Shown: one piece after another, positions 8,011-55,757 of the stretch | How positions within the stretch are numbered: the stretch's first letter is position 1 | How the letters are laid out: every line of letters begins with the position of its first letter | Assembly (NCBI GenBank): GCA_002269645.1 | Contig: NIVC01000708.1 | Span: 124,001 to 188,000 of the forward strand | DNA length: 64,000 nucleotides | Reading direction: 5' to 3' | Origin: Macrostomum lignano | Taxonomy: Eukaryota | Made by a program: the position numbers and the translations under genes | Notes under the pieces: generated by a model | Seen by the model: the letters and a program-made list of their open reading frames with translations, nothing else | What the model was told of the DNA's origin: nothing | Database searches by the model: none

Positions 8011-8983
8011 CCTCTCATTCACTCTCTCTCGCACCTGCAGCCTCATCGCCGAACTCAGCCAGCAACGCAACCTTCTCAGCAACTGTGTCGGCCCTCGTAT
8101 TTGTTTTAACCGCCCTAATCTGCGGCTTCGCTCTGGTCAGTAACTGGTCAATTTGATTTTTTTTGACAGGTAGGTAAGAGAATAACCGAATTTCGAATTC
8201 CAGCTGAAGCTGAAACTGAAGAGCAGACAGTTGCAGTCCTCAAGTCCCGCAGCAAAGCTGAGCAATGTGCCAGAGAATCCGGCTGGCGTTGCTAAGGCAG
8301 TGCGCAAGGTGAGAGGCATCTGACCCCTGTACAGAATACTGCTGTGATGGCTCAGGCAGGAGCAGGGAAGCTCAGTGGTACACGATTCCCCGCATTCATT
8401 TGGGCATTGTGCTCAAAAATAGGCCATTGGGTTTTCATGCATGCACAGACTGTACATGCCTGATGATTACAGTCAGGGCCGCTGTACACCCCGCATGAGC
8501 GTGTGTGTGAGTGCCTGCTCCTGCGAATATTGAAACTTCGAATGCTCAACAACTGATGAGCAATGATGAATTGATGATGAAATCCGAGCCGGCTCCACCG
8601 ATTTCAGACGGAGCCAACGCTGCGACCGCGCGTCACCGCCCGCAGCTGCGAGCCCGAGTGCAGCTACCTGTCGGTGGATCCCAATGCCGAGCCCGCCGAC
8701 AACTCGGACAGGAATTCGGACACCGCAAGCGACTGCACCGTCTATTTGGAAATTGTGGCCGATGCCAACTAGCGAGCTGCTTCAATGATCATCAGATTCC
8801 TCACCTTGCATGCACTGCATCTGTGTACAGGGCACCTGTTCTTGAGTGCGAGCTGAAATTTGTTTTAATGAACTCAAGCAATTGTTCAGTTTCAACGGTT
8901 AATACTCGTATTCAGCTCAAATACATCTTTGAATTTCAAAATGAACTCTGACCTCTCGATGTCCATTGCCGGGCACCGGCGCT

Positions 8984-9731
8984 TCAGTCAGTCAGTCAGT
9001 CAGTCAGTCAGTCAGTCAGTCAGTCAGTCAGTCAGTCAGTCAGTCAGTCAGTCAGTCAGTCAGTCAGTCAGTCAGTCAGTCAGTCAGTCAGTCAGTCAGT
9101 CAGTCAGTCAGTTAGTCAGTCAGTCAGTCAGTCAGTCAGTCAGTCAGTCAGTCAGTCAGTCAGTCAGTCAGTCAGTCAGTCAGTTAGTCAGTCAGTCAGT
9201 CAGTCAGTCAGTCAGTCAGTCAGTCAGTCAGTCAGTCAGTCAGTCAGTCAGTCAGTCAGTCAGTCACTGTCACTGTCACTGTCACTGTCACTGTCACTGT
9301 CACTGTCACTGTCACTGTCACTGTCACTGTCACTGTCACTGTCACTGTCACTGTCACTGTCACTGTCACTGTCACTGTCACTGTCACTGTCACTGTCACT
9401 GTCACTGTCACTGTCACTGTCACTGTCACTGTCATAGTCATAGTCATAGTCATAGTCATAGTCACAGTCACAGTCACAGTCACAGTCATAGTCACAGTCA
9501 CAGTCACAGTCACAGTCACAGTCACAGTCACGGTCAGTCACAGTCACAGTCACAGTCACAGTCAGTCACAGTCACAGTCACAGTCACAGTCACAGTCAGT
9601 CACAGTCACAGTCACAGTCACAGTCACAGTCACAGTCAGTCACAGTCACAGTCACAGTCAGTCACAGTCACAGTCACAGTCACAGTCACAGTCACAGTCA
9701 GTCACAGTCTCAGTCACAGTCAGTCAGTCAC
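8984..9731. repeat. Compound STR (CAGT)n-(CACTGT)n-(CATAGT/CACAGT)n between genes A and B
   Basis: Direct inspection. Confidence 0.98.
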
Positions 9732-10102
9732 CCAGGTGCGAATTTTATTTATTGTGAATTGAATCAGCAAATGTTTAAATGCTGGCAACGCGGATAAACT
9801 TACTGAATATAATTTCAGCATTTTAGTTATGAATATTAGTAGAAAACATCATTAATACCGAATTAAGTCAGAAATTAAAAATTGTCAAACAGCATCATTA
9901 GTTTAAATTGAAAGCTCCGACACTCTGAATAAACATAAAGGTGAACGCGCAACATTGCACAATGCCAACCTGTCCGCTCATTTTGCATCTTGATTAGAGC
10001 TGTAACAGTGGGGAGGGCAAAGTGTGAAATAAATTACAGCTGACAGATACACAGCCTGCAGAATACACAACATATCATTGCCGGTGCCTTGGCCAAGTCG
10101 TC

Positions 10103-14479
<4,377 letters not shown>

Positions 14480-14692
14480 CATGATCAACTGCTCAAACTA
14501 TAATCAATATTTTATTATTAGATAGAATTCAATATGTAAATTTAGCCATTGCCAGTTCATATTGTAAGAATTTCAGAGTTAAAGCAGTCGTATGCATGAG
14601 TGAATTACAGGAATTGAAGTATTTAAATGGCGCTGTAAATAAAATGCAAGAGTTTAAACTCCAAAGAAGCAACGGCTAATAATGCGTCTTAT

Positions 14693-15561
<869 letters not shown>

Positions 15562-15854
15562 TTACTATGCGCAGCTGTTTACAAATATTACGAATTATTT
15601 ACGAATAAATTCAACATTTGAAATGACACACAAACAGGCTATATTTAACACATAAGATAAGATAAACCAAGTGTTGATGGGGGTGATGTTGCTGGCTTAT
15701 TTATAAAATACAAAACTATAATTTTAAATATCACTTGCGAATTTGGGTTTTAAACAGAAACATATTTCCCGAAGTTACACATTTCAAACTGACAAAGTTT
15801 ATATAATCTACGGCTCGTATTCAAACATGCCAAGCAATGGAGGTCTGGTTCGCA

Positions 15855-18800
15855 ATGGCAGACCTGTTGCTGCTGCTGCTGCTGCTGCTGGTCCAGACAG
15901 CCGCGCATGCTGAAGTTGGAGCAAACTGTGAGTTCTGCATGAGCAATGAATGTCAGCATGAGTCAAAGAATGTAAGTGCTCAATCTGTGCTCATCATTGC
16001 AGGCGAGTTCCCCATTCGCAGGAGCCGCGTGCTGAGCTCCTGGCAGTCGTCTTTTGGCGACGGCCAAACTTGCTTTTACAACAGAAGCCGCACTGATGAG
16101 GAATCCGTGCTCAAAAACAAAACCTTTAGCTACCGGTTCTTCCACAGCAAAGGCCAGAGCTCAGCGGACGGCGGGTTTCACTGGTTCGCAGTGCAGCTGA
16201 ATGAGCCAGTGCTCATCAGATCTGTGACTGTGAAGGGCAGAGAGGGTGAGTCACTCACTCAAATGCGTGCTCCAAGTCTGCTGTCTCTGCTCACGGTGCT
16301 CTCGCATTCCAGATGAAGCATCGAAAGTCTTTAAAAGAGCCAGGGGCATTGAGATCTGGACATCAGACAGCAGCAGCCAGCTGTTCTCAGGAGATCACTG
16401 CAGCTCAAGGAGCATGAGCAGCCAGTTCAATGCATCACTGCATCTCTGGAGACTGTGCGGGCTGACTGAGGGCGGCCCAAGCATTTCCGCTGGTGAAAAT
16501 TTCACAGTGGATTGCATGACTGAGGTGACATGACATGACATGACATTTCAATTTTATACTGTAAGTATATATTTATTAGCGAAATCTATAATGAAGAATA
16601 ATAATCTTAGTGATGGTACTGCATTGTGATAACTGTTTTAACCATACTACTTAGGAAGTAGAATAAACAACCTGTTGCAGAGTTGTTAGAAAGTTGTTTT
16701 TCAATAACAAATTCTCAGGCGAGGTATCTTCTTCTTAGAAGAATCATTACAAACGCGGACGTCTCGAGCTCTCTTGACTACACGAGTTTCGCTGACCTCC
16801 GGCTTCAAAAGTTGCAGCTGAGTAAGTCAGGACTGTGGTGATTGCAGTTGCTCAAGTGTCAGAAATATCGTACCTGAACTGCTGCTACCTGTGAAAAATT
16901 CTACGTCTTAGGGATCTCAGAAGCTCAACTCGTTGCGGAGAACTCCAGCTTCACAATGGATTGCTCATTGGGCTGCACAGGCCAGTCGGATGCTGGCTTA
17001 GCAGCTCTGATGCAGCTCTGCTTTCCGAACGGCAGCTGCAATGCATCACGGGAGCTGCGGATACCCAGAGCGCAGCCTCAACACGCTGGAAACTACACCT
17101 GCAGACTGGGCTCTGTGGAGAGGCGCACTGCGGTCTCTGTGCTGTGTGAGTGCAGACTTGGCATGGGCTGGCAAGCATGTCTCTGTGCTGTGTGTGCAGA
17201 CTTGGCATGGGCTGGCAAGCCTGTCTCTGTGCTGTGAGTGCGTGACTGTGTGACTTGGGATGGGCTGTCAGGCATGTCACTTTCATTTTCTACTGACACA
17301 TTTCTGTCAGATCCAAATCGATGCCTTTAATTTTATGGTGGTGGCAACTAATCCTGAGAAAAGCATATCTTGTCAATCTTCTATTCGTTATTGATAAATA
17401 TGACCATTTTTATTTTGAATTCTAATTCGGTAACTTACTGACTTTTGCAGCAGTCTCCCCGCGTCAAGTGGTGATGAAGGGCTCCAAGCTCACTATGAGC
17501 TGCTCGCTGCACTGCAACGACTCAGATCTGTGCTCAAACTCAAGCGGACTGCATCTCTGCTTGCCGAACGGCAGCTGCACAGGCAGTCACAGGATGGCCG
17601 TTGCTGTGGCGCAGCCTCAGCACTCTGGAAACTACACCTGCAGACTGGGCTCTGTGGAGTCTCGAACTTCGGTCACCGTGCTGTGTGAGCTCTTTAAATT
17701 CTCTTCAAAAGTTTCTTATTACAGACAGGATATCACAGGTGGCTCAACATGCACTCAGATTTAATATTTTTCAGACCCCCCATCGAGAGTGTCAGTGTCA
17801 GTGCTGAATTTCAACAGCTGTCAGAACCTGTCAGATGTCATCGTGCAGTTTACATCAACAGAGTCTGAGCCAATCTCCGAGCACAGATGCGGCGCAGAAG
17901 CTGCTGGAATTGAAATGCAGAATCTCACACTCATTCACCAGGTTGGTTTCACATTCGTCAATCCAAAAGCTAGCCTTATTTATTTGCTCAATTGACTGTG
18001 ACGGGTGCGGGCTTGCAGAGCTCTAGCGAGAACGGAACCATCAGCCAGTGGGTCCCGGACTCGAGCCTGCAAAGCGGCGGTGTCATCTCCATAAAGTGCA
18101 TCGCTCAGCAGCAGCTCCCGCAGCAGCTCGGCTTTTGGGTATTGAGTCACGAGTCTGTGGAAGCCATCTGCACAGAACCGGAGATTTTGAGTTCCCTGTC
18201 CATTGCGATTGCCGCTGCCACAATTGGCGGTGCAGTCGCCCTGTCTGCTGTGTTGGTTGCGGTTGCGGCCGTGGTGAGAAACTGTTGGACACTTCGACCT
18301 TAATTCTTCCCTTAACTGCATGATTTACTGCTCAATGCTATTCCTGTTGCAGCGGATTTCCCGGCGGTCTCGTTCCAGAAGTTCGCCATCTGCCAGGCTG
18401 AAGATCTACTCAATTGTGCAGGTCAACTCCATGATGATCCCGTACGATGCGCAGCCGACAGATGCTGTGAGTGCCATGCGTTTTATTTTCTTTTTAATAA
18501 ATCTTTGCAACCAGTCATTTAAAAAACTATTGAACTCAAATTTTGAATTATTCCTGTTTGTGAGTTACACGAACAGTTACACAGTGTGAACAAAATTTTT
18601 ATGGATATTTTTTGTTTTACATAAAAAATTCTGCTAAATTTCTCTATCTCTACTTTCAGTAACTGATACCTTATATCTAAAATGAGTTCCGAAAGATATA
18701 AACAAGTGACCGGACTTCATTGGGGGCAGAGAAGCTCAGCAGTAAACGCTGTTGGATCCATGAAGCTTGAACTTTTGTTGTTTGATTTGATTTTGATTTT

Positions 18801-20353
18801 TAAGTTGGAACTGCTCTCGTCGGCATTCCGAGTGTCATTAGTCAAGTAGGAACTGCTCTCGTCGGCATTCCGAGTGTCATTAGTCAAGTTGGAACTGCTC
18901 TCGTCGGCATTCCGAGTGTCAATAGTCAAGTTGGAACTGCTCTCGTCGGCATTCCGAGTGTCATTAGTCAAGTAGGAACTGCTCTCGTCGGCATTCCGAG
19001 TGTCATTAGTCAAGTTGGAACTGCTCTCGTCGGCATTCCGAGTGTCAATAGTCAAGTAGGAACTGCTCTCGTCGGCATTCCGAGTGTCAATAGTCAAGTT
19101 GGAACTGCTCTCGTCGGCATTCCGAGTGTCAATAGTCAAGTTGGAACTGCTCTCGTCGGCATTCCGAGTGTCATTAGTCAAGTTGGAACTGCTCTCGTCG
19201 GCATTCCGAGTGTCAATAGTCAAGTTGGAACTGGCCTCGTGGGCATTCCAGGCGTCACGTCCGGTAGTAGATTAGTCCAGTTGTTGACTGGGCCACCCGC
19301 AGCTTGGGCTAGCCCCCACCCCCAGCTTTGATGACACTTGCTGCGTTGGATATGGTCATCATGCGCACTTCATGAACTTCCGATCTGTTCCACAGCTTCA
19401 ACTGCAGCGCCAGCGTACTCCCATGAGTGCAGCACTGCCTGTACTCAAGCACTCCTGGGCGGAGTTTGACTCCCCTCAACTCAACTCAAGAGGATGATGA
19501 TGCTCAGGTTTCTCAGGCGCGGTTGAATCACCGTTCATAGCATATTTGACAAAGTCGTCATGAATGAGAAGGAAGCCAGCGTTCTTCGTATCACGGCTTC
19601 GGACTTGAACGAATTGAAGCGCGGTCAGTGTTTGCTGTCGTACGCGTGACTTTGATTTAGCGGGTTGTCTTTGTTACAGCATCCGAGTACGCGAACATGC
19701 CAAATCGGTTCTGCACAATGTCCACGGCGAAGTTTGCTACTCCGTCCAAAAATAGCACCTCCGTTCTTGATGAGGCCAGTCACATAGAGTCAATAGTGTG
19801 TTTGGAGTCGACATTGGTCATGCCGATGACTTCGATCCGACAATGTCCACTGTCCAGAGTTCGTCCGAATCTCTCAGTTCCTTTTCAACTTTTTAATTTC
19901 TCATTGCTCTCTACGCTCGGGTTTGCTTGTACAGCAAGTACACCTAAGGCAAAAAATAATCAAACAACAAAAGTTCATGCTCGGCAGATTCAACAAACGC
20001 GTCCGACCCTCGCGACACGACCCCTTGCTTGGTGCGCGGCTGCATTCATTTAGGGCTTGTGCTCAAAATTGGCCAGGGGCTCAGGCTCGATTCACAGCCA
20101 TGAGGGCCAACCCCCCCCCCCCCACAACGCTGGTTGTGGGACGGTGGGTGTTTCTACTCGGACCTACACAAGCACCGCATTGAAACATTTGCAGGCCTGC
20201 TGTTGCACGGAGGAGCTGCCAGAGTGCAGCTACTTAACAATAATCCCACCTGGAGGTCAGGCAGAGGCCACCACAGCCGATTTGCAGGACTCTGCCAGCG
20301 AATGCACCGAGTTTATTGAGATTCTGGCTGATGGAGAGATTGAAGACTCATAA
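15855..20353 (+). CDS. Receptor C: SP - F-type lectin - 2 Ig - C2-like - TM - tail (intact)
   Basis: Exons 15855-15927, 16003-16245, 16313-16524, 16719-16821, Ig 16912-17145 and 17451-17684, 17775-17941, 18019-18273 (TM), 18353-18466, 20195-20353. Tail ECSYLTI...ECTEFIEILADGEIEDS*. Confidence 0.85.
18802..19233. repeat. 42-bp minisatellite, ~10 copies, in the last intron of C
   Basis: Unit AAGTTGGAACTGCTCTCGTCGGCATTCCGAGTGTCA(A/T)TAGTC. Confidence 0.95.
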
Positions 20354-21206: not shown

Positions 21207-24200
21207 ATGGCAGCAATTGAAATCATGGTGGTTGTGTTGCTTCTGGCACTGCACCGAACAGGAGCGACCGGAAACTGTGAGTTCGATGACGTGTTTCCAA
21301 AAATTTCAAAATATTTTTTTCCGCAGAAGGGGGGGGCGCAGGAAGGCATGTCCACCCAGTAAGAGCTATGGGGGCATGCTAATGCTTTGCCCCTCCCGCG
21401 ACACTTGATGACCCGTTATGGAAATCAATAAATTTGTTTCAGGGTGTCAAAATATAGCACCTGCAGCGCCAAAATGAGGCTCTCGGCGCCAAAATGAGAC
21501 CCTCGGCGCCAAAATGAGACCATCGGCGCCAAAATGAGACCATCGGCGCCAAAATGAATGCCTGTCTGCGGCGCCAAAATGAGTGCCTACGGCGGAAAAA
21601 AGGGTGCCTGCGGCGCCAAAATGAGGGCCTGCGGTGCCAAAATGAGTGCCTACGGCGGAAAAAAGGGTGCCTGCGGCGCCAAAATGAGGGCCTGCGGTGC
21701 CAAAATGAGTGCCTACGGCGGAAAAAAGGGTGCCTGCGGCGCCAAAATGAGGGCCTGCGGTGCCAAAATGAGTGCCTGCGGTGCCAAAATGAGTGCCTGC
21801 GGCGCCAAAGTGAGTGTCTGCGGCGCCAAAATGAGTGTCTGCGGCGCCAAAATGAGTGCCCGCGGCGCCAAAATGAGTGCCCGCGGCGACAAAATGAGTG
21901 CCCGCGGCGCCAAAATGAGTGCCCGCGGCGACAAAATGAGTGCCCGCGGCGCCAAAATGAGTGCCCGCGGCGACAAAATGAGTGCCCGAGGCGCCAAAAT
22001 AAGTGCTAACAACACGTATTTCCATAATAATGTTGGAATGTATTCCTATGTTTTAGGAATGTAGTCATGGGAACTATTGACTTACCATAAAATCCATGGC
22101 GACGCCCCTGTGCAGGTGAGCTCCCAATTCGCAGGAGCCGCGTGCTGAGCACCTGGCAGTCGTCGTTTGGCGACGGTCCGACCTGCTTCTACAACAGAAA
22201 TCAAACTGATGAAGATGCAGCAATGCAGGAAACAAAAGTTACCTGCAAATTCTTTCACAGCGCTGACAAGAGCTCAGCAGACGGCGGGTTTCACTGGTTC
22301 GCAGTGCAGCTGAATGAGACAGTGCTCATCAGATCTGTGACTGTGAAGGCTCGGCAAGGTAAAATGATAGGATTGATAATTTCGTATTTGTGAAGTGAAG
22401 ATTTAGTATTTACTGTTTGTCGCATCGAATCTTCAGTCACAATTTCGCACCTGTCTGACCACCTGCGGGCGAGCAGCATTGAAATATTCACATCCGGAAA
22501 CAGCAGCGAGATGTTCTCCGGTGTTGACCACTGCACTTCAAACAGCATGAGCAGGCAGTTCAACGACTCGCGTGAGCAGTGGAAATTGTGCGGCAATACA
22601 AAAAGCAAGCAGCAAGGGAACATCACTGCCGGGGAAAATGTCACTGTGAGCTGTGTGGCAGAGGTGAGTGCTGAGTCTCTCATGAGTCTCTCACTCTCGT
22701 GAGTCATTTTATTTTTTCTGCAATGCAAAATGTTGTTTCCCGAGACGGACCAGCCGGCCTTACCTCACGCACAGACTGAAGGCCAGTAACCAGGGACAAA
22801 ATTGAGTGCAAGTACGCCGTGCACCCGAAATCACCACAGAAGAATCAGTTTTAACCAAAAAATTTCAGGTTCGACATCTGCTGCTGCGGAGACCCCAGTC
22901 GGCAGAGGGGCAGAACTACATGAACTTCGCCGACTTGAGACTTCAGACTGTGTCGCTGAGTAGGTTGATGGATGAAGATGAATGGAGATGAAGATGGATG
23001 AATTTTTTACTTTGACTTTGACTTTCCAATCGTCAGGCATATACACTCTCTGTTCCTTGGGGGGGGGGGTGGTACTCATGGGTTGCGAATCTGAAGTCAG
23101 AAGCCTCAAATGAAAGTGGCAGCGCACGGAATCGAACCAGGGGTCGCGGCGCGAGAGGCAGGTGCCTTTACTGCTGAGCTCCTGGGGCTCTCTACGAGCG
23201 CATGCTATTTAACACCCAGAACTAATTGTCCTTGATCCACAACAAGCCTGAAGATACACCTCGGAGTTGATTATCAGCTTTATATTTCTTTTATACACCC
23301 AGTGGGCAGCTAATTATGATTTGCAATTAGGCCATATTTTATATTGAAAAGTCACCAAAATGCTGACTGTACTTTTCAGAATTAGAGAGTCCTCAAGTGG
23401 TTGCTGTGGGCTCCAATTTCACGGTAAGCTGCTGGCTGCAGCAGTGCAACGGCTCAAAGCTGAGTACGAACTCAAGCGAGCTGCAGCTCTGCATTCCAAA
23501 TGGAACCTGCGTCTCAAATTTGAAATATTTTATTGCCGATGTGCAGCCTGAGCACTCGGGCAGCTACTCCTGCAAGTTCGGCTCGGTTTCCAAGTCAACT
23601 GAAGTAGCTGTTCTGGGTAAGAGCGCTTTAACTCAGCACTCTGTGTGACTCATGGATGAAGGAATCTTACATGGATGATGGACTCCTTCATCCATGGTGT
23701 GACCGCAATAAGAGCGCATTTCAATTGACCTGCACCTGCAGCATAGGCTCAATAAATAAATCGTCTTCAATCGCAGTCCTATGTGAGAGACTGCTCTATG
23801 CTCACATTCTTTCCAACATGCAATTTAAACCTGAGCTTGGATAAAGACGTATGAGCATGCCTGCATAAGCATGAGCAAAACCTGAGCAACACTCATTGAC
23901 TGATTGAGTGAGTCACTCATTAGCTAACTTCAGTTTCTTACATTCTTACACTGTCGATGGCGAGAATGCATTCAATAGGACACGGAGGTTTTATTCCACC
24001 CAAGAGTGTAGGGATTACAATAAAATAGAAATAGCTCAGTTTGACAAAATTTATGAATCTGAACTTTATTAAATTTCCAGCTTCATCTCCAAGCCAGAAA
24101 GTTTCCGAAAACGCAAACTTCACCGTGAGCTGCTCGCTGCACTGCGGAAATGCATCGCAATGCTCAGATCGCTTATTGGGTGGCGACCTCCGGCTGTGCC

Positions 24201-38100: not shown

Positions 38101-39912
38101 TCTGAGACTTTACCGTTTCAGCGTCCTCTCCTCATCAAGTTATTGCTGAGAACTCCAGTCTCAACCTGAGCTGCTCACTACACTGCGGTGATGCAGCTCA
38201 GTGCACAGACTCAGTTGAGCTCAAGCAGCTGCAGCTGTGCCACCCCAACGCTGATTGCACAGCGAATTCAAGCCTTGAGATTGCAGCGGCTGCTCCCGCC
38301 CGCTCAGGGACATACAGGTGCAAAATTGGGCAGTCGGTTGTTGCGTTCACAAAAGTGGCAGTGCTCTGTGAGTCAGGGTTTGATGCTGAGACACCTGTGC
38401 AGCTTAATATGAGGCTTATTGGACACACGCTCTCCCACCTGTACCTGCAGCTGCGACAACCGATCAAGTAGTCGCTGAGGACTCCAGCTTCAATGTGAGC
38501 TGCATCTTACACAGCGATGAGTACAACTTGTTTGGCAGGCCGCAGCTGTGCTTCCCAAACGGCAGCTGTTTCAACAAGACGGCACTGCAAGTTTTTAACG
38601 CAACCGCTCAGAATTCAGGCTCCTACAGGTGCCGTCTCCGCGGGGCTGAAGTCACAGCGACTGTTTCTGTACTGTGTAAGAAACCGGCCTCTCTCTGTTT
38701 TCACTTTTATGCAGGCATTACAAATGGATTTGAATTTTTCAATTGCAGCATCGTCTGAAGATCAAGTCGTGGCTGCAAACTCCAGCTTCAAGGTCACCTG
38801 CCAGCTGCACCCCGACATCGGTGCAGATTGGAGTAGCCTACTGCTCTGCCAGCCCAACGGAAGCTGCAGCACAGGTAGTCGCATACTGCAGATTTCCAGT
38901 GCTGCACCCGAGAATGCTGGAATCTACACCTGCAGATTGGGCTTGATGTTTGCGTCAGCCTCTGTTGCAGTGCTTTGTAAGTCCTGGCCTCTGTCATGCT
39001 GCTTAGTTAAGCACTCAGAATGTTGCCGTGACTCCTGACTTGATTTTGCCAACAGACCCGCCAAGAGTTGTTGCTATTTCGGTTTTCAACTCACACAACT
39101 GCTCAAGTCAATCAGATGTGATCGTTCAGTTGAACTCATCTGCATCTCAGCCGGTTTCGGAGCACAGCTGCATGGTTGATGAAGATGGACAAAGAATGAG
39201 AAATATAACGCTCTTGTCATTCGTGAGTTTGGATGAGGAATTTCTGAAGGGTATTGAACTTTAGTTTGAGACTGCCTGACGGGCTGATTGCAGATCTCAA
39301 GCAGCAAAGGCTCTGTGAGCAGGTGGGCACTCGCTGGTGATGAGGCTGAGAAGCTGGGCTGGAGCAGCGGCTCAGTGAGCTGCACCGCGGCTCAGAACTT
39401 GCCAGACCACATCAAATTCTCCGGGTTCAGCCATAGAACTGCGAAGTGGAGCTGCAGTCTGAAGTCAAGTGCTCGAGCTGCTTCAGCCAGTCTGTGGATT
39501 ATCTGCATCTGTGCTCTGCTCATCCTCGCCACGCTGCTCATGTTTGCTGCAATCGCTGTGAGTCCTCTGAAATATTTTAGCGCCTTTCATGAACTCCAGT
39601 TGATCAAAAACAAAAACCAAAACTATTTTAGCGCATTTGCCGCCACTCTGAACCGGTTTCTGCAGAGATGAACGCGGTTCCAACTCCTTTGAGAACACCT
39701 GAGTCAAATTATGGTCAAGCCGAGGTGGGTCTTTAGCTCTTACATGTTCTAGTTGCAGTATCAAAAGTACTTTTAGTTTTTTCTGAACATTCCAGACAGT
39801 CAGTAACTTGAGAGAAGCTTCATCAGAGTGCAGTTACTACACAGTGGTCCCGGCTAAAGGTGCTCCAACTGCTGCAGATGGCTATCAAGAGATGGTCGCT
39901 GATGGGGACTGA
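35102..39912 (+). CDS. Receptor E: SP - L1 - Ig - L2 - 6 Ig - C2-like - TM - tail; two lesions (possible pseudogene, or rescued by exon skipping)
   Basis: SP 35102-35159; L1 35225-35467, 35597-35808, ~35876-35978 (no in-frame AG acceptor); Ig 36050-36283; L2 36372-36611, 36689-36900 (GC donor), 36986-37076; Ig 37156-37395, 37480-37716, 37804-38037 (in-frame TAA at 37806), 38122-38367, 38451-38675, 38749-38976; 39056-39222; 39294-39557 (TM); tail 39632-39724, 39796-39912 (ECSYYTV...DGYQEMVADGD*). Confidence 0.72.
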
Positions 39913-41236: not shown

Positions 41237-44200
41237 ATGCGAGCTGTTTCCAAATTTCTATTGCTTCTGGCTGTTGCGCACACCACTGCTATCCAAGACT
41301 GTGAGTTGGAGTTGAGTTCGGGGGTTTCAACCAAGGCAATAAATTCTCAAATCGACAGCTTCATCACTGTTACTCGCAGGCAAAATAGAAATCCGCCGCA
41401 CGCGCGTTCTCAACTCGTGGCAGTCGTCCTTCGGCAACGGTCCAACTTGCTTCCACAACAGAACTGCATCGGAGGAAGCCGCTGTGCTCAGCAAGCCCAG
41501 CAGCAGCTACAGGTTTTTTCACAGCGGGGACGGCTCGGCAGCAGACGGCGGGTTTCACTGGTTCGCAGTGCAGCTGAGTGAGCCACTGCTCATCAGCTCA
41601 GTGACCCTGAAGGGCAGAGAATGTGAGTGGCACTGTGATGCAGCTCATGCGCGCACAGAGCTCGTTCGACTTGATTTTCTCAACTCATTCTAGACGGGAA
41701 ATCGTTCACTTACTCGAGAACCAGGGGATCGAAGTCTGGACAGCAGGAAGCAGCAGAGTGATGCTCTCGGGAGATCACTGCAGCTCCAGGAGCATGAGCA
41801 GCCAGTTCAGAGAGTCGCGGTGGTACTGGAGGCTGTGCGGCGTCACGGACGGCCAGCAAAGAAGCATCAGGGCTGGTGAGACACTGACGGTGAACTGCAC
41901 ACAGGATGTAAGTGTCTCAACCATTGGCATCAATAAACTGCAGTGTTCTAATGCTTCTTTTTTGAACAAGTTATTTTTCAAATCCAGGTCCGGTACTTAC
42001 TGTTGAGGCGTGACGTCAGAACTGCTGATCCTTCCATGACCCACGACTTCATGAGCTTTGCAGACTTCAGCCTGCAGACAATGGAGCTGAGTAAGTGCTT
42101 CGGATTGGACAGAACATGCTCACCTGGACACAGTTGATAGCAAATAGCAAAAATTCTGATCACGAAAATGTTCACGAAACTTGGCACGATTCACACCCAT
42201 AAGGCGCAACCCCCAAGGCACAGAGATTGCCGTCAGCATTATATCAATTACTAACTTTGCGAAGTGTCTTCCCCTCGTCTGCAGAAGTGTCTTCCCCTGA
42301 AGAGACGGTTAGAAACGACAATGTCTCAGTCAGCTGCTCACTGCACTGCAAAGGTACGAAAGTCGACGCGGAGACAAAAAGATTAAAACTCTGCTCTCCC
42401 CGTGGCAGCTGCACAGCTTCCAACGCGGTACACATCCCCAGAATCCAGTCAGAGGACTCAGGAAGTTACACCTGCAAGATTGGCACGGTCAGGAAGACCA
42501 CCAACCTCACCGTGTATTGTGAGGCGCTCTTCAATACTTTTTTCTCGAAATTATTTTCCTCCGCTTTTCAAACAACGGAAAATCCGAATGAATCCGAATC
42601 CGCAGACCCACCATCGAGAGTGGCGGTCTCAGTGCTGAACTCTCATAACTGCCAGAGTTTGACCCATGTGACCGTGCAGTTCACGTCTTCCTCATCGCAG
42701 CCCGTGTCTGAGCACAGATGCAACGCCAGAGTTGGAGTCAACTTGTGGAATCTCACACTGCTACTAGTAGTGCGTGCTCAAAATTGAGACAGTACTGACT
42801 GACTGACTGACTGACTGACTGACTGACTGACTGACTGACTGACTGACTGACTGACTGACTGACTGACTGACTGACTGACTGACTGACTGACTGACTGACT
42901 GACTGACTGACTGACTGACTGACTGACTGACTGACTGACTGACTGACTGACTGACTGACTGACTGACTGACTGACTGACTGACTGACTGACTGACTGACT
43001 GACTGACTGACTGACTGACTGACTGACTGACTGACTGACTGACTGACTGACTGACTGACTGACTGACTGACTGACTGACTGACTGACTGACTGACTGACT
43101 GACTGACTGACTGACTGACTGACTGACTGACTGACTGACTGACTGACTGACTGACTGACTGACTGACTGACTGACTGACTGACTGACTGACTGACTGACT
43201 GACTGACTGACTGACTGACTGACTGACTGACTGACTGACTGACTGACTGACTGACTGACTGACTGACTGACTGACTGACTGACTGACTGACTGACTGACT
43301 GACTGACTGACTGACTGACTGACTGACTGACTGACTGACTGACTGACTGACTGACTGACTGACTGACTGACTGACTGACTGACTGACTGACTGACTGACT
43401 GACTGACTGACTGACTGACTGACTGACTGACTGACTGACTGACTGACTGACTGACTGACTGACTGACTGACTGACTGACTGACTGACTGACTGACTGACT
43501 GACTGACTGACTGACTGACTGACTGACTGACTGACTGACTGACTGACTGACTGACTGACTGACTGACTGACTGACTGACTGACTGACTGACTGACTGACT
43601 GACTGACTGACTGACTGACTGACTGACTGACTGACTGACTGACTGACTGACTGACTGACTGACTGACTGACTGACTGACTGACTGACTGACTGACTGACT
43701 GACTGACTGACTGACTGACTGACTGACTGACTGACTGACTGACTGACTGACTGACTGACTGACTGACTGACTGACTGACTGACTGACTGACTGACTGACT
43801 GACTGACTGACTGACTGACTGACTGACTGACTGACTGACTGACTGACTGACTGACTGACTGACTGACTGACTGACTGACTGACTGACTGACTGACTGACT
43901 GACTGACTGACTGACTGACTGACTGACTGACTGACTGACTGACTGACTGACTGACTATTAACTGCAAATGTCGCTGCACTGCAGAGCAAGGACGGTTACG
44001 TCAGCAGATGGGTATTTCCTACTGATGACGTAAAGAGGCTAGATATCAGCAGCGCCATCATCACTTGCTCTGCCGTGCAGAGTTTTCCGAAGGGCATCCG
44101 TATTCAGGCTGTCCACACAGACTCAACATTCACGAGCTGTTGCAGCGGAAGTCTGGTGTCTACAGTACTGGTGCTGCACATCGCTATGGGATTTTGTTTT

Positions 44201-44876
44201 GGCTTCATCGCGGCCGCAGCCTCCGCGGCAGCCATCAGACTCCGAATGCTCAACCGGGTAAGTACACACTCACAATGTGGCTGACATTGTGCACCAGAGG
44301 AGGTTGCAGGCAGTTGACGAAACTTCTCGAAGATGCTGCGAGTTGTTAGAACCATCAATTTGGATTTCTGTTGCTCATCGATTTCATCAAGACGTCACTT
44401 GTGAAGTCGCTCGTCCGATTTCATCAAGACGTCACTTGTGAAGTCGCTCGTCCGATTTCATCAAGACGTCACTTGTGAAGTCGCTCGTCCGATTTCATCA
44501 AGACGTCACTTGTGAAGTCGCTCGTCCGATTTCATCAAGACGTCACTTGTGAAGTCGCTCGTCCGATTTCATCAAGACGTCACTTGTGAAGTCGCTCGTC
44601 CGATTTCATCAAGACGTCACTTGTGAAGTCGCTCGTCCGATTTCATCAAGACGTCACTTGTGAAGTCGCTCGTCCGATTTCATCAAGACGTCACTTGTGA
44701 AGTCGCTCGTCCAATTTCAGACAAGGCCGGACGCCTGCGGCTCTGCAGGCTGTGCCCGGCGGCGTCCAACGGCAGGGAGACCGGCCGCAGGGGGACCGGC
44801 GGCACCGCAGTCTGCATCTGAGTACGAGAATTCGGAGTACAAGCTGGAGAATGCGACTGGAATCTATATTCTGTGA
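41237..44876 (+). CDS. Receptor F: SP - lectin - 1 Ig - C2-like - TM - type-2 tail; apparent 1-nt deletion in lectin exon 2 (real or homopolymer error)
   Basis: Exons 41237-41300, 41380-41622, 41694-41907 (214 nt, needs 215; G-run near 41724-41727), 41988-42090, Ig 42285-42518, 42606-42769, 43985-44257 (TM), 44721-44876 (SEYENSEYKLENATGIYIL*). Confidence 0.72.
42794..43956. repeat. (GACT)n microsatellite, ~290 perfect units, in an intron of F
   Basis: Direct inspection. Confidence 0.99.
44380..44712. repeat. 37-bp minisatellite x9, directly upstream of the last exon of F
   Basis: Unit GATTTCATCAAGACGTCACTTGTGAAGTCGCTCGTCC. Confidence 0.97.
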
Positions 44877-48385: not shown

Positions 48386-48419
<34 letters not shown>

Positions 48420-48448: not shown

Positions 48449-48503
<55 letters not shown>

Positions 48504-49248: not shown

Positions 49249-49482
49249 CGCTGGCTACGCCCCCCCCCCCTAAATCAAGCTAGTTACCTTTCAGTTTATT
49301 TCCAGCTTCCGGTAGAAGGAACTGGCCCACGGCAGTGTCTATGCGCGATGGCTTGCGACTGCTTGGGGGAACTTCGCACAGGACGAACTTTTGCACAAAA
49401 ACAGCCGCGGCTGACAATTCTGGACCCGCACAACTTGGCTGAGAGGCTTGGATTAAGAATTACAGCCTTGTCATCGACACCT

Positions 49483-52400
49483 ATGAAGCTGACTCTGCTG
49501 CTGCTGCTGCTGCTGGCATTGCTCTGCGCACGAGCGACTGACACGTGTGAGTTGAGTGCCGGTTTGTTGTAATCGCAGACAGAGAGCACTGCTCATCCCC
49601 ATTGCTCCAACTTGCAGGCGAGTTCCCAATTCGTTGGAGCCGCGTGCTGAGCACCTGGCAGTCGTCCTTTGGAATCATCTTTGGAGAACCCACGTGTTTC
49701 TACCAACGAAGCAGGTCGCGTGAGGATTCCTTACTAAACAATATAAGATACAAATTCTTCCACAGCAAAGGGCAGGGCGAGGCAGACGGCGGGTTTCACT
49801 GGTTCGCAGTGCAGCTGAATGAGACAGTGCTCATCAGATCTGTGACTGTGAAGGGCAGAGGCGGTGAGTCACACACTCAAATGCGGGCTCCAAGCCAGCT
49901 GTCTCTGCTCACGGTGCTCTCACATTCCAGATAAAGCATCGCATGTCTTTGAAAGAGCCAGAAGCATTGAGATCTGGACATCAGACAGCAGCAGTCAGCT
50001 GTTCTCAGGAGATCACTGCAGCTCAAGGAACATGAGCAGCCAGTTCAGAGAGTCCCAGCAGCACTGGAGACTGTGTGGGGTCACGGAGAGCAACAATTCA
50101 CAGATCGCGGCTGGGGAGATCTTCACAGTGAACTGCGTTGCAGAGGTGAGTTTTGGAGCGAGTTCTGGTAACCATCGCAACCGATTTCGCAACACCAACG
50201 CAACCACTTCAGGTGCGGCAGTTGCTTCTGCGAAGAAACGTTACAGCTGCTTCAACTGACCACGGCTTCATGAGCTTCGCGGACCTGCGGCTTCAAACGC
50301 TCCCGCTGAGTAAAAGCAGCTGTTCTCAAATGTTTGCTTCTTTGATTACGCGAAAAAAAACAGTTATTGAGCCCTCTAATTTTATCTGAGATGGGATACT
50401 CCCCTTTGCCTGAAGTCCTCAAAAAAGAAGATGCTAGCATGTTCCCTTTTACCATTTAGCCTGTACAGTAATAAGTTTTTCAACCGAGACTGCTAGGATA
50501 GATTTATCAGTGCTCATTAAAAATTGATCCAAACATCTCGCTTTCAGACATTTCAAGCCCTCAACTGGTGGCAGAGCAGTCCAGCTTTGAAGTTCGCTGC
50601 TCTCTGCAATGCGATGGAGCTGATCACCTGAGCACACACTCAGCCAAGTTGCAGCTGTGCTCACCAAACGGCAGCTGCACCGTCAGGAACCAGCTGAAGG
50701 TCGACAGAGCTCAGCCATCGCACTCTGGAGTTTACACCTGCAGAATTGGCTCGATAAATCAATCGCAATCCTATGTGAGAGCCTGATGTAGTTTGAGTTT
50801 GCTCTTATTAGTTCCTTAAATATTAACCTGCCTGTCACAGTTAAAATGTTCCTATAAATTAAATATAGACAGCTTTTAATACGGAGACCTTGATCATGCC
50901 ATTTCGTATCGCATTCCAGCGTCATCACCAAACCAAGTGGTTGCTGAGAACTCCAGCCTCACGCTGAACTGCACTCTGCACTGCGGAGGCGGCGATGCAG
51001 CTCAGTGCGCAGACTCCGCTGCTGTCGGACAGCTGCTGCTGTGTCGCCCCAACACGACCTGCACAGCACAGACGAGTCTGCAGATCCCAGCGGCAACTCC
51101 AACACAATCGGGAGACTACAACTGCAGCATTGGACAGGTGGTTGCTGTCACAAGTGTGGCTGTTCTCTGTGAGTAGCAGCTTTGCACCTGAGTGGTCAGT
51201 CACTGTCTGCATGTACATCGCTGACAAATGAAGTCATTCCTGTTTGTTATTTTACAGCTGCAACGCCGCATCAAGTGGTCCCTGAGGGCTCCAGCCTTAA
51301 CCTGAGCTGCGTACTGCATCATGCGGGCTCAGCTGATTTCCGCCAGCCTCAGCTGTGCTACCCGAACGGCAGCTGCTCAGCCGAGAGCTCGATAAGCGTT
51401 GCCAGTGCCAGGCCATCGAACTCCGGTCTCTACAGGTGTCGGCTCGGCTCACTGGAAATACCGTCACTTGTTGCTGTGCTGTGTAAGTTGCTCAGATCAT
51501 CTTACACTTTCTTGCACTCTCAGTTTCTGAACAAGAACTGATCAGTTTCTCTGTGGATCAGTAAGTGATCAGTCTCCAGATTCATTCTTGTACAAAAGTA
51601 AGAGTTTCTCTACTGACAAGTGTAGCATGCTTAAGCAGGCAGTTCGGGCACCTATAGTTTGCACTCCGTGACCCCCACCCAGCCTATCCACTTCCCTCTG
51701 CTCGAGCACATCCCAACGCGCACTCAATGAACTGGTAATCTGTGTTCTACCAGACAACACTCGTTAATATACAGACACAGCCACATTCTATTTCTCCACC
51801 TTTTTGAGTGGCTAACTATGCACTCGCAACAACCAGCTAGAGTTGCTCGCTACAACAAGTAGAAAGCAATGAGTGTGGCGATTTATTTCTGCATGCAAGG
51901 CAAAAAATGTGACCAAGTAAGAGAGCAGAGTTCTGGTAGGAGTTCCGACTTGAGCTTGGATGAAGGCGTACGAGTATGAACATGATCAGAAAAATCCATC
52001 TCAGGGTCGATATTCTACTCGTACTTTTAAGCAGCTGTGCACTCCAAGTGGGGACCGCCGACACAATCAGCAGATTCACATTGCTCATGTGAAACATCTG
52101 TCAAAATTACTTCAAGTCGCTGTTCTGAGTGAGTCATTGATTAGCTTAAAATGCTTTCACTAAAGATGACAAGGATGCATTCGATGGGACACGCAGATTT
52201 TTTCCACCCAAGAACTTCCATTTCAATAGAATAGAAATAGGCTCAGCTTGAATACATTTATGAATCTGAACTTTATTAAATTCCCAGCTTCATCTCCAAG
52301 CCAGAAAGTTTCCGAAAACGCAAACTTCACCGTGAGCTGCTCGCTGCACTGCGGAAATGCATCGCAATGCTCAGATCGCTTATTGGGTGGCGACCTCCGG

Positions 52401-55400
52401 CTGTGCCCTCCGAATGGGAGCTGCCTGACAAATTCAAGTCTGCAAGTGGACAGAGCTCAGGCAATGCACTCCGGAGTTTATACTTGCAGATATGACGTCA
52501 TTGAGATCGAGACAGAAGTCTTTGTTCTTTGTAAGTAGAAAGTAGGCTGCCTTCAGAATCTTGTTGCTCAGTATTGCTCAATGTTGCTCAGTGTTGCTCA
52601 GTGTTGCTCAATGTTGCTCAGTGTTGCTCAGTGTTGCTCAGTGTTGCTCAGTGTTGCTCAATGTTGCTCAATGTTGCTCAATGTTGCTCAATGTTGCTCA
52701 ATGTTGCTCAATGTTGCTCAATGTTGCTCAATGTTGCTCAATGTTGCTCAATGTTGCTCAGTGTTGCTCAATGTTGCTCAGTGTTGCTCAGTGTTGCTCA
52801 ATGTTGCTCAGTGTTGCTCAATGTTGCTCAGTGTTGCTCAGTGTTGCTCAATGTTGCTCAGTGTTGCTTAGTGTTGCTCAGTGTTGCTCAATGTTGCTCA
52901 GTGTTGCTCAATGTTGCTCAGTGTTGCTCAATGTTGCTCAGTGTTGCTCAGTGTTGCTCAATGTTGCTCAGTGTTGCTCAATGTTGCTCAGTGTTGCTCA
53001 GTGTTGCTCAATGTTGCTCAATGTTGCTCAGTGTTGCTCAATGTTGCTCAATGTTGCTCAGTGTTGCTCAGTGTTGCTTAGTGTTGCTCAATGTTGCTCA
53101 GTGTTTCTCAGTGTTGCTCAGTGTTGCTCAGTGTTGCTCAGTGTTGCTCAATGTTGCTCAGTGTTGCTCAGTGTTGCTCAGTGTTGCTCAGTGTTGCTCA
53201 ATGTTGCTCAATGTTGCTCAATTTCACAATCGATTAACTCACCTTCATCAGGTGAGTTCCCAATTCGGCGAAGTCGCATTCTGAGTTCGTGGCAGTCCTC
53301 ATTCGACGATGGTCCGACGTGTTTCCACAGCAGGAATCAGGCAGACGAAGCCTCCATCATCAGCAACAGGCAAACCAGCTACAAGTTCTTCCACAGCGCC
53401 AACAGAAGCCAAGCAGACGGCGGGTTTCACTGGTTCGCCGTGCAGCTGAATGAGCCAGTGATCATCAGATCTGTGACTTTGAAGGGCAGAGAGGGTGAGT
53501 GAAAGACAACTTACTGCTTCTTTCTGCCTTAGGCTTCTGTAAAGACTGAGTCTCCTGCTCTGAAGATTCCACCGTACAGTAATATGTTTCAGTAAGATCA
53601 AAAGTAACTCCTCATCTTATTTTCAGACGGTGTGATGTATAATTATAATCGAGCAAAGGACATTGAAATATTTACCTCCAACTGTAGCAGCTCCCTGATC
53701 CATGGGGACAACTGCAACATCAGAAATATAAGCCTTCAGTTTAAAAATTCGATGCACCATTGGAGGCCATGCGGCGTGACTAAAAAGCAGGGAGACTTCG
53801 CAGATGGGGAAATGTTTCACGTGAAATGCGTTGCTGAGGTAAAAATATTTCAAATGTCTGCAGTGATTTGAGTCTTATGGTCTCTTAAAGCAACCTGAAA
53901 TGATGAGCATTTAAACTGCAGGTCCGAAGTCTACTCCTGCGAAGAAACGTGTCTAAAGACACGGACGGGCACATGAGCTTTGCTGACCTGAGGCTTCAGA
54001 CTGGGCAAATCAGTAAGATTTCTCGACTGTCATGAGTTGTGTCCAAGTCCTGGTATGTGTGCTAAGTTGAAACGCTGAAAGTACGAGCTGTAAGCAAAAT
54101 GACTGAATTTCGTCTCAAAGGTGTCTCAAAAATTGCATTTCAGAAGTCGAGAGCCCCAAGGCGGTGCTGCAGCACTCAGCATTCTCAGTGCGCTGCCTGT
54201 TGGACTGCAACGGTCGAACCGAATACTCACCAGAGTTGGAGCTCTGCTTTCCAAACGGAAGCTGCGTTGGACAAGCTGAAGCCGTCATTCACAGGGCGAA
54301 ACTGTGGCACCATGGCAGCTACACGTGCAAGCTGGGCAGCTCGCGGAGCTCAAAGTTCTTAACGGTGTTTTGTAAGTTGATTCCTGCCTCTGGATGACAG
54401 TCGATTGATTAGCATTTGGTAAGCAGCGTTTCACTGGGACTCCTCTCGTACACAGATTGGGACAAAATTCTCAGTGTATGCTCACAAGGAGTGCAAGCTT
54501 AAGGCTGACTGGTGGCAGTAGGAGCAGCCATCAACGGCAGCAGATCAGGCTGCATTTCAGGTCACTTCCCTATTAGCCTTTTATCCTTACAGGGTATGTC
54601 AACTAAGTCCGGAAAGGGAAACGGATTGTCAAAGGGATGGTTTCTCTCTCGGACGCCATTATTGGATCCACCAACCAGTGTAGAACGATCGATGGAGATG
54701 TGTACATATTCAAAATATTCACATAGACTTTTGCATTCAAATGATGTGGAGTAACTTCTATTCATCTTCGGTACGGTATTCAATACGTATCGATCCACGG
54801 CCTAAATAGGTTTGAAAAAATCATGAAAACCATCAGATAACTGAAAAGCTTATTGATCGAACTTGATGAACTCCATTCCCCTTTTTAATATGCTCACAGA
54901 CCCGCCATCAAGCGCATCAATTTCTGTACTCAATCTGCCAACCTGCGAGAACTCATCCGACGTATTGGTACAGTTCGCATCGTCTGCATCTCTACCAGTG
55001 CCCGAGCACAGATGCGGCGCTGTTGGTGGCGGATTGGAAGTGCGAAACCTCACGCAGCTGTCATTTGTAAATTGCTTGCATTTTGCAATTTCACACTATG
55101 AGTGACTATCCGCTGACATGCTGACCAGCGAGCTTCATCAATTCCAGAGCTCGAGTGGAGACGGTTGGGTCAGCACGTGGGCACTGGCGATCGGGGGGAA
55201 GCTGAGCTCAGAGTGGCTTGTGGGCCTCGTCGAGTGCAGCGCAGTGCAGAATCTGCCGCCGGAGATCCGGTTCAAGACCGAGCACAGGGCCTCAGCTTGC
55301 TACAGCTGCGGCAATCACAAAGGTCTCATCAAACCTGATGTGCAGTCCTTACGCATGTACATTTCACAGTTCCTGTACGGATTTCTAACAGCAACTGCTC

Positions 55401-55757
55401 TGCTAAGTGTGCTCTTGCTTGTCTTGGGCTCGGTGAGTAACCCCTCTCTCTACATTATATTTTCCGTCTCTGTGCTCTAAGCTGCCGTGTTGCATCTGCT
55501 AAATTCAGTTTTCAGTCATCAAATTCAGAGTAAAGAAGTCGTGGAAAAAACAAACTATTCCAATGGTAAGCTTTGGTTTTCTCATTCTGTACAGTCGACT
55601 CAAACTGTGACAGCTAAAGTTCGAACTCTTTGCGCTTTAGTCCGATCGATCCACGACGCCCGGATCTGGAGCACCGGTTGCTGCCGCTTCTGCTGCCATG
55701 GAGTATGAGAACTCTGGTTACAACCTGGAGGATGCTACTGGTGTCTACGTGATCTGA
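49483..55757 (+). CDS. Receptor G: SP - L1 - 4 Ig (first frameshifted) - L2 - Ig - C2-like - TM - type-2 tail
   Basis: SP 49483-49546; L1 49618-49863, 49931-50145, 50213-50309; Ig 50548-50774 (227 nt, apparent 10-nt deletion), 50920-51168, 51258-51482, 52288-52530; L2 53252-53494, 53627-53838, 53922-54012; Ig 54144-54371; 54900-55066; 55148-55432 (TM); 55509-55565; 55641-55757 (MEYENSGYNLEDATGVYVI*). Intact if the first Ig exon is skipped. Confidence 0.75.
52562..53221. repeat. 10-bp tandem (TGTTGCTCA[AG])n upstream of lectin L2 of G
   Basis: Direct inspection. Confidence 0.97.

Follow-up and report, generated by a model that had tools for sequence, protein, structure and literature searches.

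Families of clustered receptors of the immunoglobulin superfamily (IgSF), with cytoplasmic tails that carry immunoreceptor tyrosine-based inhibitory or switch motifs (ITIM and ITSM, respectively), are already known from vertebrates, tunicates and cnidarians. In a 64,000-nucleotide stretch of the genome of the free-living flatworm Macrostomum lignano (assembly GCA_002269645.1, contig NIVC01000708.1, positions 124,001 to 188,000 of the forward strand; hereafter the window), eight paralogous receptor genes, A to H, could be distinguished, which are arranged head-to-tail and all encoded on the plus strand. These are predicted to encode type I membrane receptors of a lineage-restricted and previously uncharacterised family, which combine lectin-like and immunoglobulin-like (Ig) domains. 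No paper was found in the literature which describes the A-H family, clustered IgSF receptors with ITIM- or ITSM-bearing tails in flatworms, or flatworm SHP2 or Grb2. The anatomy of the array is solid and unreported in flatworms, while its role in signalling is what we infer.

The closest functional analogue of the array is found in the CD33-related Siglecs, including the pairs Siglec-5/14 and Siglec-11/16. Both form a tandem, fast-evolving cluster, with an N-terminal domain of glycan-binding type, Ig domains that vary in number, a single transmembrane (TM) helix and a short tail, in which ~20-27 residues separate a tyrosine motif close to the membrane from a distal, ITSM-like one. The ectodomain exons of differently tailed Siglec genes have been homogenised, and this is matched by a block shared between genes D and G with 90-93.5 % nucleotide identity. 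By contrast with the Siglecs, the N-terminal domain of the A-H proteins is predicted to be a galactose-binding-domain-like jelly roll and not a V-set Ig domain with a sialic-acid-binding Arg, some genes encode two or three lectin-like modules, the proximal motif has a Cys at position -2, and the alternative tails have tyrosines of their own instead of a charged TM helix that recruits DAP12. There is also no sequence homology between the two. The TxYxxI sequence represents the ITSM consensus in the tails of PD-1 and the SLAM family, and a proximal Tyr ~25 residues upstream of it recalls the layout of PD-1, where the ITIM-ITSM arrangement engages the tandem Src homology 2 (SH2) domains of SHP-2. 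However, the A-H proteins share neither ectodomain nor tail homology with PD-1 or SLAM, their proximal site is non-canonical, and SH2 binding would be attributed to them by analogy.

Three invertebrate systems are also comparable. The Alr genes of Hydractinia represent a large, clustered family, in which each exon encodes one domain of a single-pass IgSF protein and the tails are more divergent than the ectodomains, where some tails contain an ITIM or an immunoreceptor tyrosine-based activation motif (ITAM) found by pattern, and homologues of SHP, SHIP and Syk occur in the Hydractinia genome (PMC9546547). The A-H genes are likewise clustered, single-pass and encoded with one domain per exon, with tyrosine motifs in their tails. 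The Alr proteins, however, combine V-set-like Ig domains with a Fn3-like spacer, have no lectin-like domain and commonly contain ITAMs, which are absent from A-H, and an allorecognition role has been demonstrated for Alr1 and Alr2, whereas a role for A-H would be predicted from sequence. The Fester/FcoR genes of Botryllus form diverse, clustered IgSF families whose alleles or splice forms exchange tyrosine "core" motifs, such as ITIM and hemITAM, and where a motif can be weakened by natural substitutions, for example LAYAIV versus FAYAIV (PMC12582321). These weakened motifs parallel the Tyr/Phe variants of A-H, but in the flatworm motifs are swapped between paralogs, and the binding domains and motifs occur on one chain, while in Botryllus the motifs are found on separate co-receptors and the ligand-binding proteins are motif-free. 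Finally, the VIgLs of Biomphalaria (FREPs, CREPs and GREPs) are lineage-expanded lophotrochozoan families which combine IgSF and lectin-type domains (PMC10875847). The A-H genes do not belong among the VIgLs, which lack a TM helix or signalling tail, while A-H are predicted membrane receptors with tyrosine motifs, a reversed domain order (lectin-like domain N-terminal) and a different lectin-like fold. The A-H family is a member of none of the Siglecs, Alr, Fester/FcoR or VIgLs, from which it is distinguished by its N-terminal fold, multiple lectin modules per chain, non-canonical proximal motif and absence of a charged-TM arm.

The window has a eukaryotic, multi-exonic appearance, with three recurrent exon families, all on the plus strand, emerging from the clustering of open reading frames (ORFs). 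The eight genes are delimited by eight signal-peptide exons, one 5' of each gene, with none preceding the internal lectin-like modules (Table 1). From the N- to the C-terminus, a signal peptide is followed by one to three lectin-like modules, zero to seven four-cysteine Ig domains, a stalk, an uncharged TM helix and a short tail. Each of the twelve lectin-like modules in the window (three in D, two each in E and G) is encoded by three exons (GEFPIRR...FHWFAVQL...VTVKGRE / IEIWTS...C.AE / VR.LLLRR...FADLRLQ). The Ig exons, ~234 nt in length and in phase 1-1, are bounded by clean YAG acceptors and by GTRAGT donors, and number zero in A, three in B, two in C, seven each in D and E, one in F, five in G (one defective) and at least one in H. 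The stalk comprises two exons (fused in D), with the TM helix at the end of the second, while the tail is mainly encoded by the last exon. A Cys forms the junction codon 5' of every lectin-like module, whether after the signal peptide or after an Ig exon, and the internal modules would thus splice in frame. The alternative that these represent separate genes was rejected, as they lack signal-peptide exons and would join the Ig exon before them without loss of frame, with Cys once more at the junction. Canonical splice sites and uniform phases occur across the array, so that modules can be duplicated, exchanged or skipped with the frame intact, and open coding sequences could be assembled for B, C, D, E and G. 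The only plausible donor of lectin exon 2 in gene E (36897-36906) is GCAAGT, which would form a GC-AG intron, while all other donors in the array are GT. In genes A, B, C and F, introns adjoining the stalk/TM or tail exons are occupied by tandem repeat arrays (7173-8024, 12152-13204, 18802-19257 and 44370-44719, respectively), which also occur 3' of G (55800-56700) and thus gather around the 3' exons of the array genes. A lone GRYTCK match at position 1076 was discarded, as it lies outside any ORF.

When compared against Pfam, the N-terminal module matched the F5_F8_type_C family with an E-value of 0.0067 (17 bits), below the gathering score of 28.2. An AlphaFold2 model, with ten window modules as input, had a pLDDT of 74 and a pTM of 0.77, and Foldseek matched it to CBM32 (best E 3.6e-5), the F-lectins 3cqo and 1k12 and F5/8-C domains, with TM-scores of only ~0.5. 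The label galactose-binding-domain-like (discoidin/CBM32/F-lectin fold) given to the module here is that suggested by the model. Fucose-binding F-type lectins are characterised by the motif H-x24-R-x-D-x4-[R/K], which is absent from the eleven modules searched, even when the spacing was relaxed. In the twenty-three Ig exons, C17, C63 and G-x-Y-x-C are conserved and four cysteines are invariant, with C36/C42 as an extra disulfide pair, while the strand-C Trp is absent. Their profile matched titin, MDGA1, contactin, Robo and Fc receptors among the PDB sequences (E 8e-10 to 1e-5), and all of the fifty listed Foldseek matches to the AlphaFold2 model (pLDDT 86.6) are of Ig type. Although the single-domain Pfam searches gave Ig matches below the gathering score only, and no match for the stalk or tail, the exons can be assigned to the IgSF on the basis of these profile and structural matches.

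The original prediction covered positions 8608 to 55757, from the acceptor of the gene A tail exon to the stop codon of gene G, and divided the tails into two classes. A six-frame scan located each of the motifs it had named on the plus strand: the C-S-Y-x-x-V/I sites of A to E, the Phe variants of B and C, the GYQEM of E and the class-2 tails of F and G. The class-1 tails (A-E) contain a proximal E-C-S-Y-x-x-V/I and a distal site, with 26, 24, 27, 27 and 16 residues, respectively, between the proximal Tyr and the distal Tyr or Phe, and in A, B, D and E the distal aromatic residue precedes the C-terminus by eight residues. Searching all tails by regular expression, the canonical ITSM T-x-Y-x-x-[V/I] was identified in A (TVYLEI) and D (TVYEEI), at the predicted spacing of 26-27 residues, and in the distant M. 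lignano paralog P0027 (TEYLDI), but not in B and C (Phe), E (GYQEM), F or G. The distal site of E conforms to YxxM, while F and G contain Y-E-N and two further tyrosines, and neither an ITAM nor an NPxY motif occurs in any tail. In composition-preserving shuffles of each tail, TxYxx[VI] occurred in 0.5-2.4 %, YxN in 11-16 % and YxxPhi in 15-55 %. An ITSM match is thus unlikely to arise by chance in a single tail, while the other motifs are significant solely through their conservation across paralogs. The tail exon of gene C begins with A-C-C-C (20195-20206), a membrane-proximal cysteine cluster which could be a candidate palmitoylation site, and the D tail has extra tyrosines (HYFDYEE).

The tail exons were required to be spliced to the TM exons for these motifs to belong to the receptors, and this joining is supported in all seven tailed genes, where the TM-exon donor and the tail-exon acceptor (typically tttcag) are both in phase 0, so that direct joining is in frame. 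Database gene models also join the TM helix and tail of A, via an extra 111-nt exon (P0004/P0005, the former being the NCBI annotation of assembly GCA_002269645.1), of C, through the 114-nt exon 18353-18466 (P0034), and of F directly (P0002/P0003). In exon-by-exon comparisons, gene A (tblastn against P0005/P0004) and gene F (against P0002/P0003) shared 92-100 % identity with these M. lignano proteins.

Genes with different tails share parts of their ectodomains. The block common to D and G extends over ~2 kb and includes an Ig exon, a 30-bp minisatellite, a whole lectin-like module and a second Ig exon, along with the introns, yet D terminates in a class-1 and G in a class-2 tail. In the identity matrix of the lectin-like modules, the two closest pairs both cross the tail classes (D2/G2, 94 %; C/G1, 72 % amino acid identity). 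Clustered paralogs with near-identical ectodomain parts but different tails represent the ectodomain hallmark of paired receptors. Unlike motif-less activating tails, however, the class-2 tails bear three tyrosines of their own. The 30-bp minisatellite is situated directly 5' of the lectin modules D2 (24342-24723) and G2 (52562-53222, the longer copy) and is open in all three frames, with CCSVLLSVAQ-like repeats; minisatellites fill several introns of the array.

Conservation of the tyrosine motifs, on which the original prediction depended, could be observed both among paralogs and in a second copy of the locus. Distant M. lignano paralogs, recovered with the lectin-module profile at E-values of 7e-23 to 3e-12, retain tyrosine motifs in their tails, which end in ...DEFYINS...DVTEYLDIV... 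in P0027 and ...MEYEQP...AETYADIY... in P0019. The T-E-Y of P0027 implies that Tyr is the ancestral state at the distal site, from which the neighbouring genes B and C derived their Phe through a codon change from TAY to TTY. When aligned with MAFFT, the class-1 distal Tyr corresponds to the middle Tyr of class 2, with a common [YF]xxxxA[DT]G, which suggests that both classes arose from a single tail by divergence. The tail sequences are best explained by an ancestral tail with two tyrosine motifs, of which B and C would have exchanged the distal Tyr for Phe and E would have changed the distal motif to YxxM, while class 2 would have diverged into the form with Y-E-N.

The second copy (L001; GCA_002269645.1, NIVC01002544.1, which encodes P0004) is colinear with genes A to C at 89-97 % identity, and can thus be regarded as allelic or homeologous. 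It retains every tail Tyr and Phe, with the B copy reading TEFLKIVADGD. The exons of the window differ from it by 3.3 % mismatches, with gaps in-frame only, compared to 7.3 % mismatches and 2.7 % gaps in the introns. In gene B, Ig exon 3 and stalk exon 1 (11665-12145 versus L001 15459-15944) are the most diverged parts, with 7 % and 14 % nucleotide differences and pN/pS values (the ratio of non-synonymous to synonymous differences per site) of 1.27 and 0.73, respectively, and this divergence exceeds that of the adjacent introns, so that the membrane-proximal ectodomain may have undergone diversifying change or gene conversion. The next gene annotated 5' of the array in L001 (positions 1-1137) is situated ~9 kb from the gene A homeolog, and its 1091-aa product contains Pkinase and PK_Tyr_Ser-Thr domains.

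The family appears to be narrowly distributed and almost restricted to M. lignano. All relatives found in protein searches derive from this species and are named "Ig-like domain-containing" or "uncharacterized". The signal-peptide (poly-Leu) query yielded five matches among 8000 candidates scored, where low-complexity words possibly dominate; an alignment of the lectin module was used next, and a query with the stalk, TM helix and tail added P0034 alone. A HMMER search with the lectin-module profile against 1.84 billion representative proteins gave twenty-two matches, all from M. lignano except for one metagenome contig from JGI and one weak bacterial match. The 1.6-kb metagenome contig (L002; JGI metagenome 3300040801) encodes two lectin-like modules without an internal intron, followed by a four-cysteine Ig exon, and its lectin-lectin-Ig modules show that relatives exist beyond the reference genome.

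The array is interpreted here as encoding ligand-binding surface receptors, whose tail tyrosines would be phosphorylated and read by SH2 proteins of the worm, so that different tails give different outputs, while the same binding domains would be combined with different tails through the exchange of modules. Our confidence in this interpretation is evenly balanced. Binding of a ligand by the ectodomain would lead a Src-type kinase to phosphorylate the tail tyrosines and so recruit SH2 proteins. The doubly Tyr-bearing tails of A and D would engage a tandem-SH2 phosphatase of the SHP-2/Corkscrew type, the E tail a p85-type adaptor and the class-2 tails of F and G a Grb2/Drk-type adaptor, with the Phe tails of B and C as attenuated versions, and the near-identical binding modules of D and G would feed different intracellular outputs. 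The terms "inhibitory", "attenuated" and "adaptor-recruiting" are applied by analogy only, following likeness to vertebrate motifs, and phosphorylation, the SH2 partners, the sign of the signal, the ligand and the tissue are likewise inferred. The proposal that these tails address "host" SH2 proteins was misplaced; the window is part of an animal genome, with all relatives in M. lignano, and the partners would be the worm's own. A viral reading was rejected on the basis of these relatives and of the colinearity of the locus with another contig of GCA_002269645.1. Orthologues of SHP-2 and Grb2 occur in other protostomes, namely csw and drk in Drosophila and ptp-2 and sem-5 in Caenorhabditis elegans. 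The names of the human homologues PTPN11 and PTPRC appear in a published list of M. lignano transcripts (PMC5946080). A bolder extension, which we hold tentatively and consider unlikely, is that platyhelminths independently built a Siglec/KIR-style array, in which exon exchange couples the same glycan-binding-type and Ig modules to ITSM (SHP-2/Corkscrew), Tyr-to-Phe "attenuated", YxxM or YEN tails, and where opposing signals from one class of ligand (microbial glycans, or those of conspecific sperm or self) would be integrated without charged-TM adaptors.

A number of observations weigh against the phosphotyrosine signalling interpretation, beginning with the motifs themselves. The canonical ITIM [S/I/V/L]xYxx[I/V/L], searched for in all tails, is not matched by the CSYxx[V/I] of A-D on account of the Cys at position -2, and gene E matches it solely at a neighbouring second Tyr (SYYTVV). 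The proximal motif is at best ITIM-like, and of the predicted ITIM-ITSM pairing only the distal half, canonical in A and D, could be upheld. Similarly, the paired-receptor prediction is supported as far as the joining of different tails to shared ectodomains is concerned (D/G and C/G1), but a classical activating arm is absent from the seven tailed genes, since there is no ITAM for adaptor coupling and, as had been predicted for Lys and Arg, no charged residue in the TM helices (zero K, R, D or E in seven, and one His, in F). While pN/pS relative to L001 is lower for the cytoplasmic exons (0.42) than for the ectodomain exons (0.5-0.8), the counts are small and the tail value is based on seven substitutions, too few to be conclusive. 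The multi-lectin splicing of D, E and G, as modelled, is also predicted.

Tyrosine motifs may alternatively function in trafficking. The proximal and distal Tyr motifs of class 1 all fit the generic YxxPhi sorting signal, and YLSV, YLTV, YLEI and YEEI could be bound by the mu subunit of AP-2, in which case A-H would be endocytic or scavenger lectin-like receptors that internalise glycans, with the tail variants tuning the rate or routing. Tyrosine-based internalisation motifs are common in endocytic lectins, and ITIM and ITSM overlap YxxPhi by definition. Sorting accounts for the class-1 motifs about as well as SH2 signalling, and the short tails, lack of an ITAM or charged TM residue and modelled carbohydrate-binding-module fold of the N-terminal domain are all consistent with it. 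However, YxxPhi is weakly specific, given its frequency in the shuffled tails, and sorting leaves unexplained the Thr at position -2 (A, B, C, D and P0027), the spacing of 24-27 residues and the fixed eight residues to the C-terminus. It also does not extend to the class-2 tails, which yielded zero YxxPhi matches and are nonetheless conserved (P0001, F and G). Trafficking is therefore possible as the main role of the motifs, but on balance not likely.

The E-I-V-A-D-G-D surrounding the distal site remains conserved in B and C despite the Phe, and this site may consequently work without phosphotyrosine. The acidic block C-T-x-[Y/F]-x-E-I-V-A-D-G-D, or the A-T-G-x-Y-x-[I/L] end of class 2, could dock a cytoskeletal or scaffold protein with Tyr and Phe interchangeable, which would make A-H adhesion or recognition molecules. 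B and C retain the distal block in its entirety with a Phe, which also occurs in the B homeolog, and this agrees with such a role, as do the A-x-G spacing after the aromatic residue in both classes, the combination of tandem Ig and discoidin-like domains common in adhesion molecules (contactin, sidekick, MDGA1 and NCAM among the PDB matches) and the class-2 ends YIL and YVI, which resemble class II PDZ ligands. Yet the YID end of P0001 does not constitute a PDZ ligand, the block matches no known docking motif, and a Phe is found only in the neighbouring genes B and C, while A, D, E and the distant paralogs (TEYLDI, ETYADI) have retained the Tyr. We consider phosphorylation-free tails improbable.

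Several members of the array may be decaying. Lectin exon 2 of gene F has a 1-nt frameshift relative to P0002 near position 41725, within a run of G, which may be an assembly indel or a real inactivating mutation. No in-phase acceptor is present for the third lectin exon of the E1 module (35885-35978), and the usual phase-1 donor has been lost from the first Ig exon of G (50502-50783); both genes have open coding sequences when these parts are skipped, of 846 aa for E without the E1 module (lectin exons and Ig exon 36050-36283) and of 893 aa for G without the defective exon, and the fact that they can be skipped without a break in frame points to turnover of modules inside genes. No stalk, TM helix or tail of gene H was found within the window, where its first Ig exon is directly followed by a retrotransposon-like ORF (61449-64000, plus strand; DUF1759 (gag-type) and CCHC zinc fingers) that runs off the window end, and H may thus be interrupted or continue past the window. 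That the array as a whole is largely decaying duplicated DNA with few or no functional genes, its motif "conservation" stemming from recent duplication and gene conversion, as these defects, the flanking retrotransposon sequences and the minisatellites in several introns might suggest, is nevertheless very improbable, given the complete open coding sequences of B, C and D (603-1325 aa, 10-19 exons, canonical sites), paralogs merely 44-72 % identical in the lectin module that retain splice sites, cysteines and tail motifs, exons less diverged than introns with only in-frame gaps relative to L001, and the location of the F frameshift in a G homopolymer, where it may be an assembly error.

The positions of the array genes and of other features are given in Table 1. 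Just 5' of gene A, the region 1550-4616 on the minus strand resembles a fragmented element of the long terminal repeat (LTR) type, with three separate pol ORFs labelled by Pfam.

Table 1. Array genes, tail motifs and other features, in coordinates of the 64,000-nucleotide window
Feature	Position	Strand	Content or basis
Gene A	5889..8772	+	Signal peptide 5889-5961; lectin-like 6035-6277, 6348-6565, 6635-6722; no Ig exons
Gene A 3' exons	TM 8043-8136; cytoplasmic 8204-8314; tail 8608-8772	+	Splice sites
Gene A tail motifs	CSYLSV 8659-8676; TVYLEI 8737-8754	+	Six-frame motif scan
Gene B	10103..14479	+	617-aa complete coding sequence, 10 exons: signal peptide, 1 lectin-like, 3 Ig, stalk
Gene B 3' exons	TM 13217-13471; tail 14339-14479	+	Open coding sequence, GT-AG sites throughout
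Gene B tail motifs	CSYLTV 14372-14389; TEFLEI (Phe variant) 14444-14461	+	Six-frame motif scan
Gene C	15837..20353	+	603-aa complete coding sequence: signal peptide, 1 lectin-like, 2 Ig, stalk
Gene C 3' exons	TM 18019-18273; cytoplasmic 18353-18466; tail 20195-20353	+	Database model P0034
Gene C tail motifs	CSYLTI 20225-20242; TEFIEI 20306-20323	+	Six-frame motif scan
Gene D	21207..32967	+	1325-aa open coding sequence, 19 exons, no stop; signal peptide, three lectin-like modules, 7 Ig exons
Gene D lectin-like modules	22116-22959, 24753-25503, 26101-27590	+	
Gene D 3' exons	Fused stalk/TM 31674-32137; tail 32818-32967	+	
Gene D tail motifs	CSYMLV 32851-32868; TVYEEI 32932-32949	+	Six-frame motif scan
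Gene E	35102..39912	+	Signal peptide; decayed E1 module; intact lectin module 36372-37076; 6 further Ig exons; stalk
Gene E decayed E1 module	Lectin 35225-35978; its Ig exon 36050-36283	+	
Gene E 3' exons	TM 39294-39557; tail 39796-39912	+	
Gene E tail motifs	CSYYTV 39829-39846; GYQEM (YxxM) 39880-39894	+	Six-frame motif scan
Gene F	41237..44876	+	Signal peptide, 1 lectin-like module, 1 Ig, stalk
Gene F 3' exons	TM 43985-44257 (His within helix); class-2 tail 44721-44876	+	
Gene F tail end	EYENSEYKLENATGIYIL, then stop, from 44820	+	Six-frame motif scan
Gene G	49483..55757	+	Signal peptide; lectin-like 49618-50309, 53252-54012; 4 intact Ig and defective Ig 50502-50783; stalk
Gene G 3' exons	TM 55148-55432; class-2 tail 55641-55757	+	
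Gene G tail end	EYENSGYNLEDATGVYVI, then stop, from 55701	+	Six-frame motif scan
Gene H	59174..61027	+	5' part: signal peptide, lectin-like 59325-60564, first Ig exon 60791-61027
Shared Ig-lectin-Ig block	D 23905..25863; G 52126..54378	+	Self-blastn, 90-93.5 % DNA identity
pol ORF, aspartyl protease	3732-4616	-	Pfam
pol ORF, reverse transcriptase	2941-3984	-	Pfam
pol ORF, integrase	1550-2299	-	Pfam

If the phosphotyrosine signalling interpretation is true, the A-H array would represent a further independent case in which the same ectodomain is joined to different tails, with a different binding domain and no charged-TM/ITAM-adaptor arm. The natural Tyr-to-Phe paralogs B and C provide ready-made controls for motif function, and as M. 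lignano is tractable (RNA interference, transgenesis and transparent tissue), it may offer an experimental handle on the origin of receptor systems through exon shuffling and gene conversion. Should the motifs be sorting signals, the array would still comprise an uncharacterised, lineage-restricted group of lectin-like receptors.

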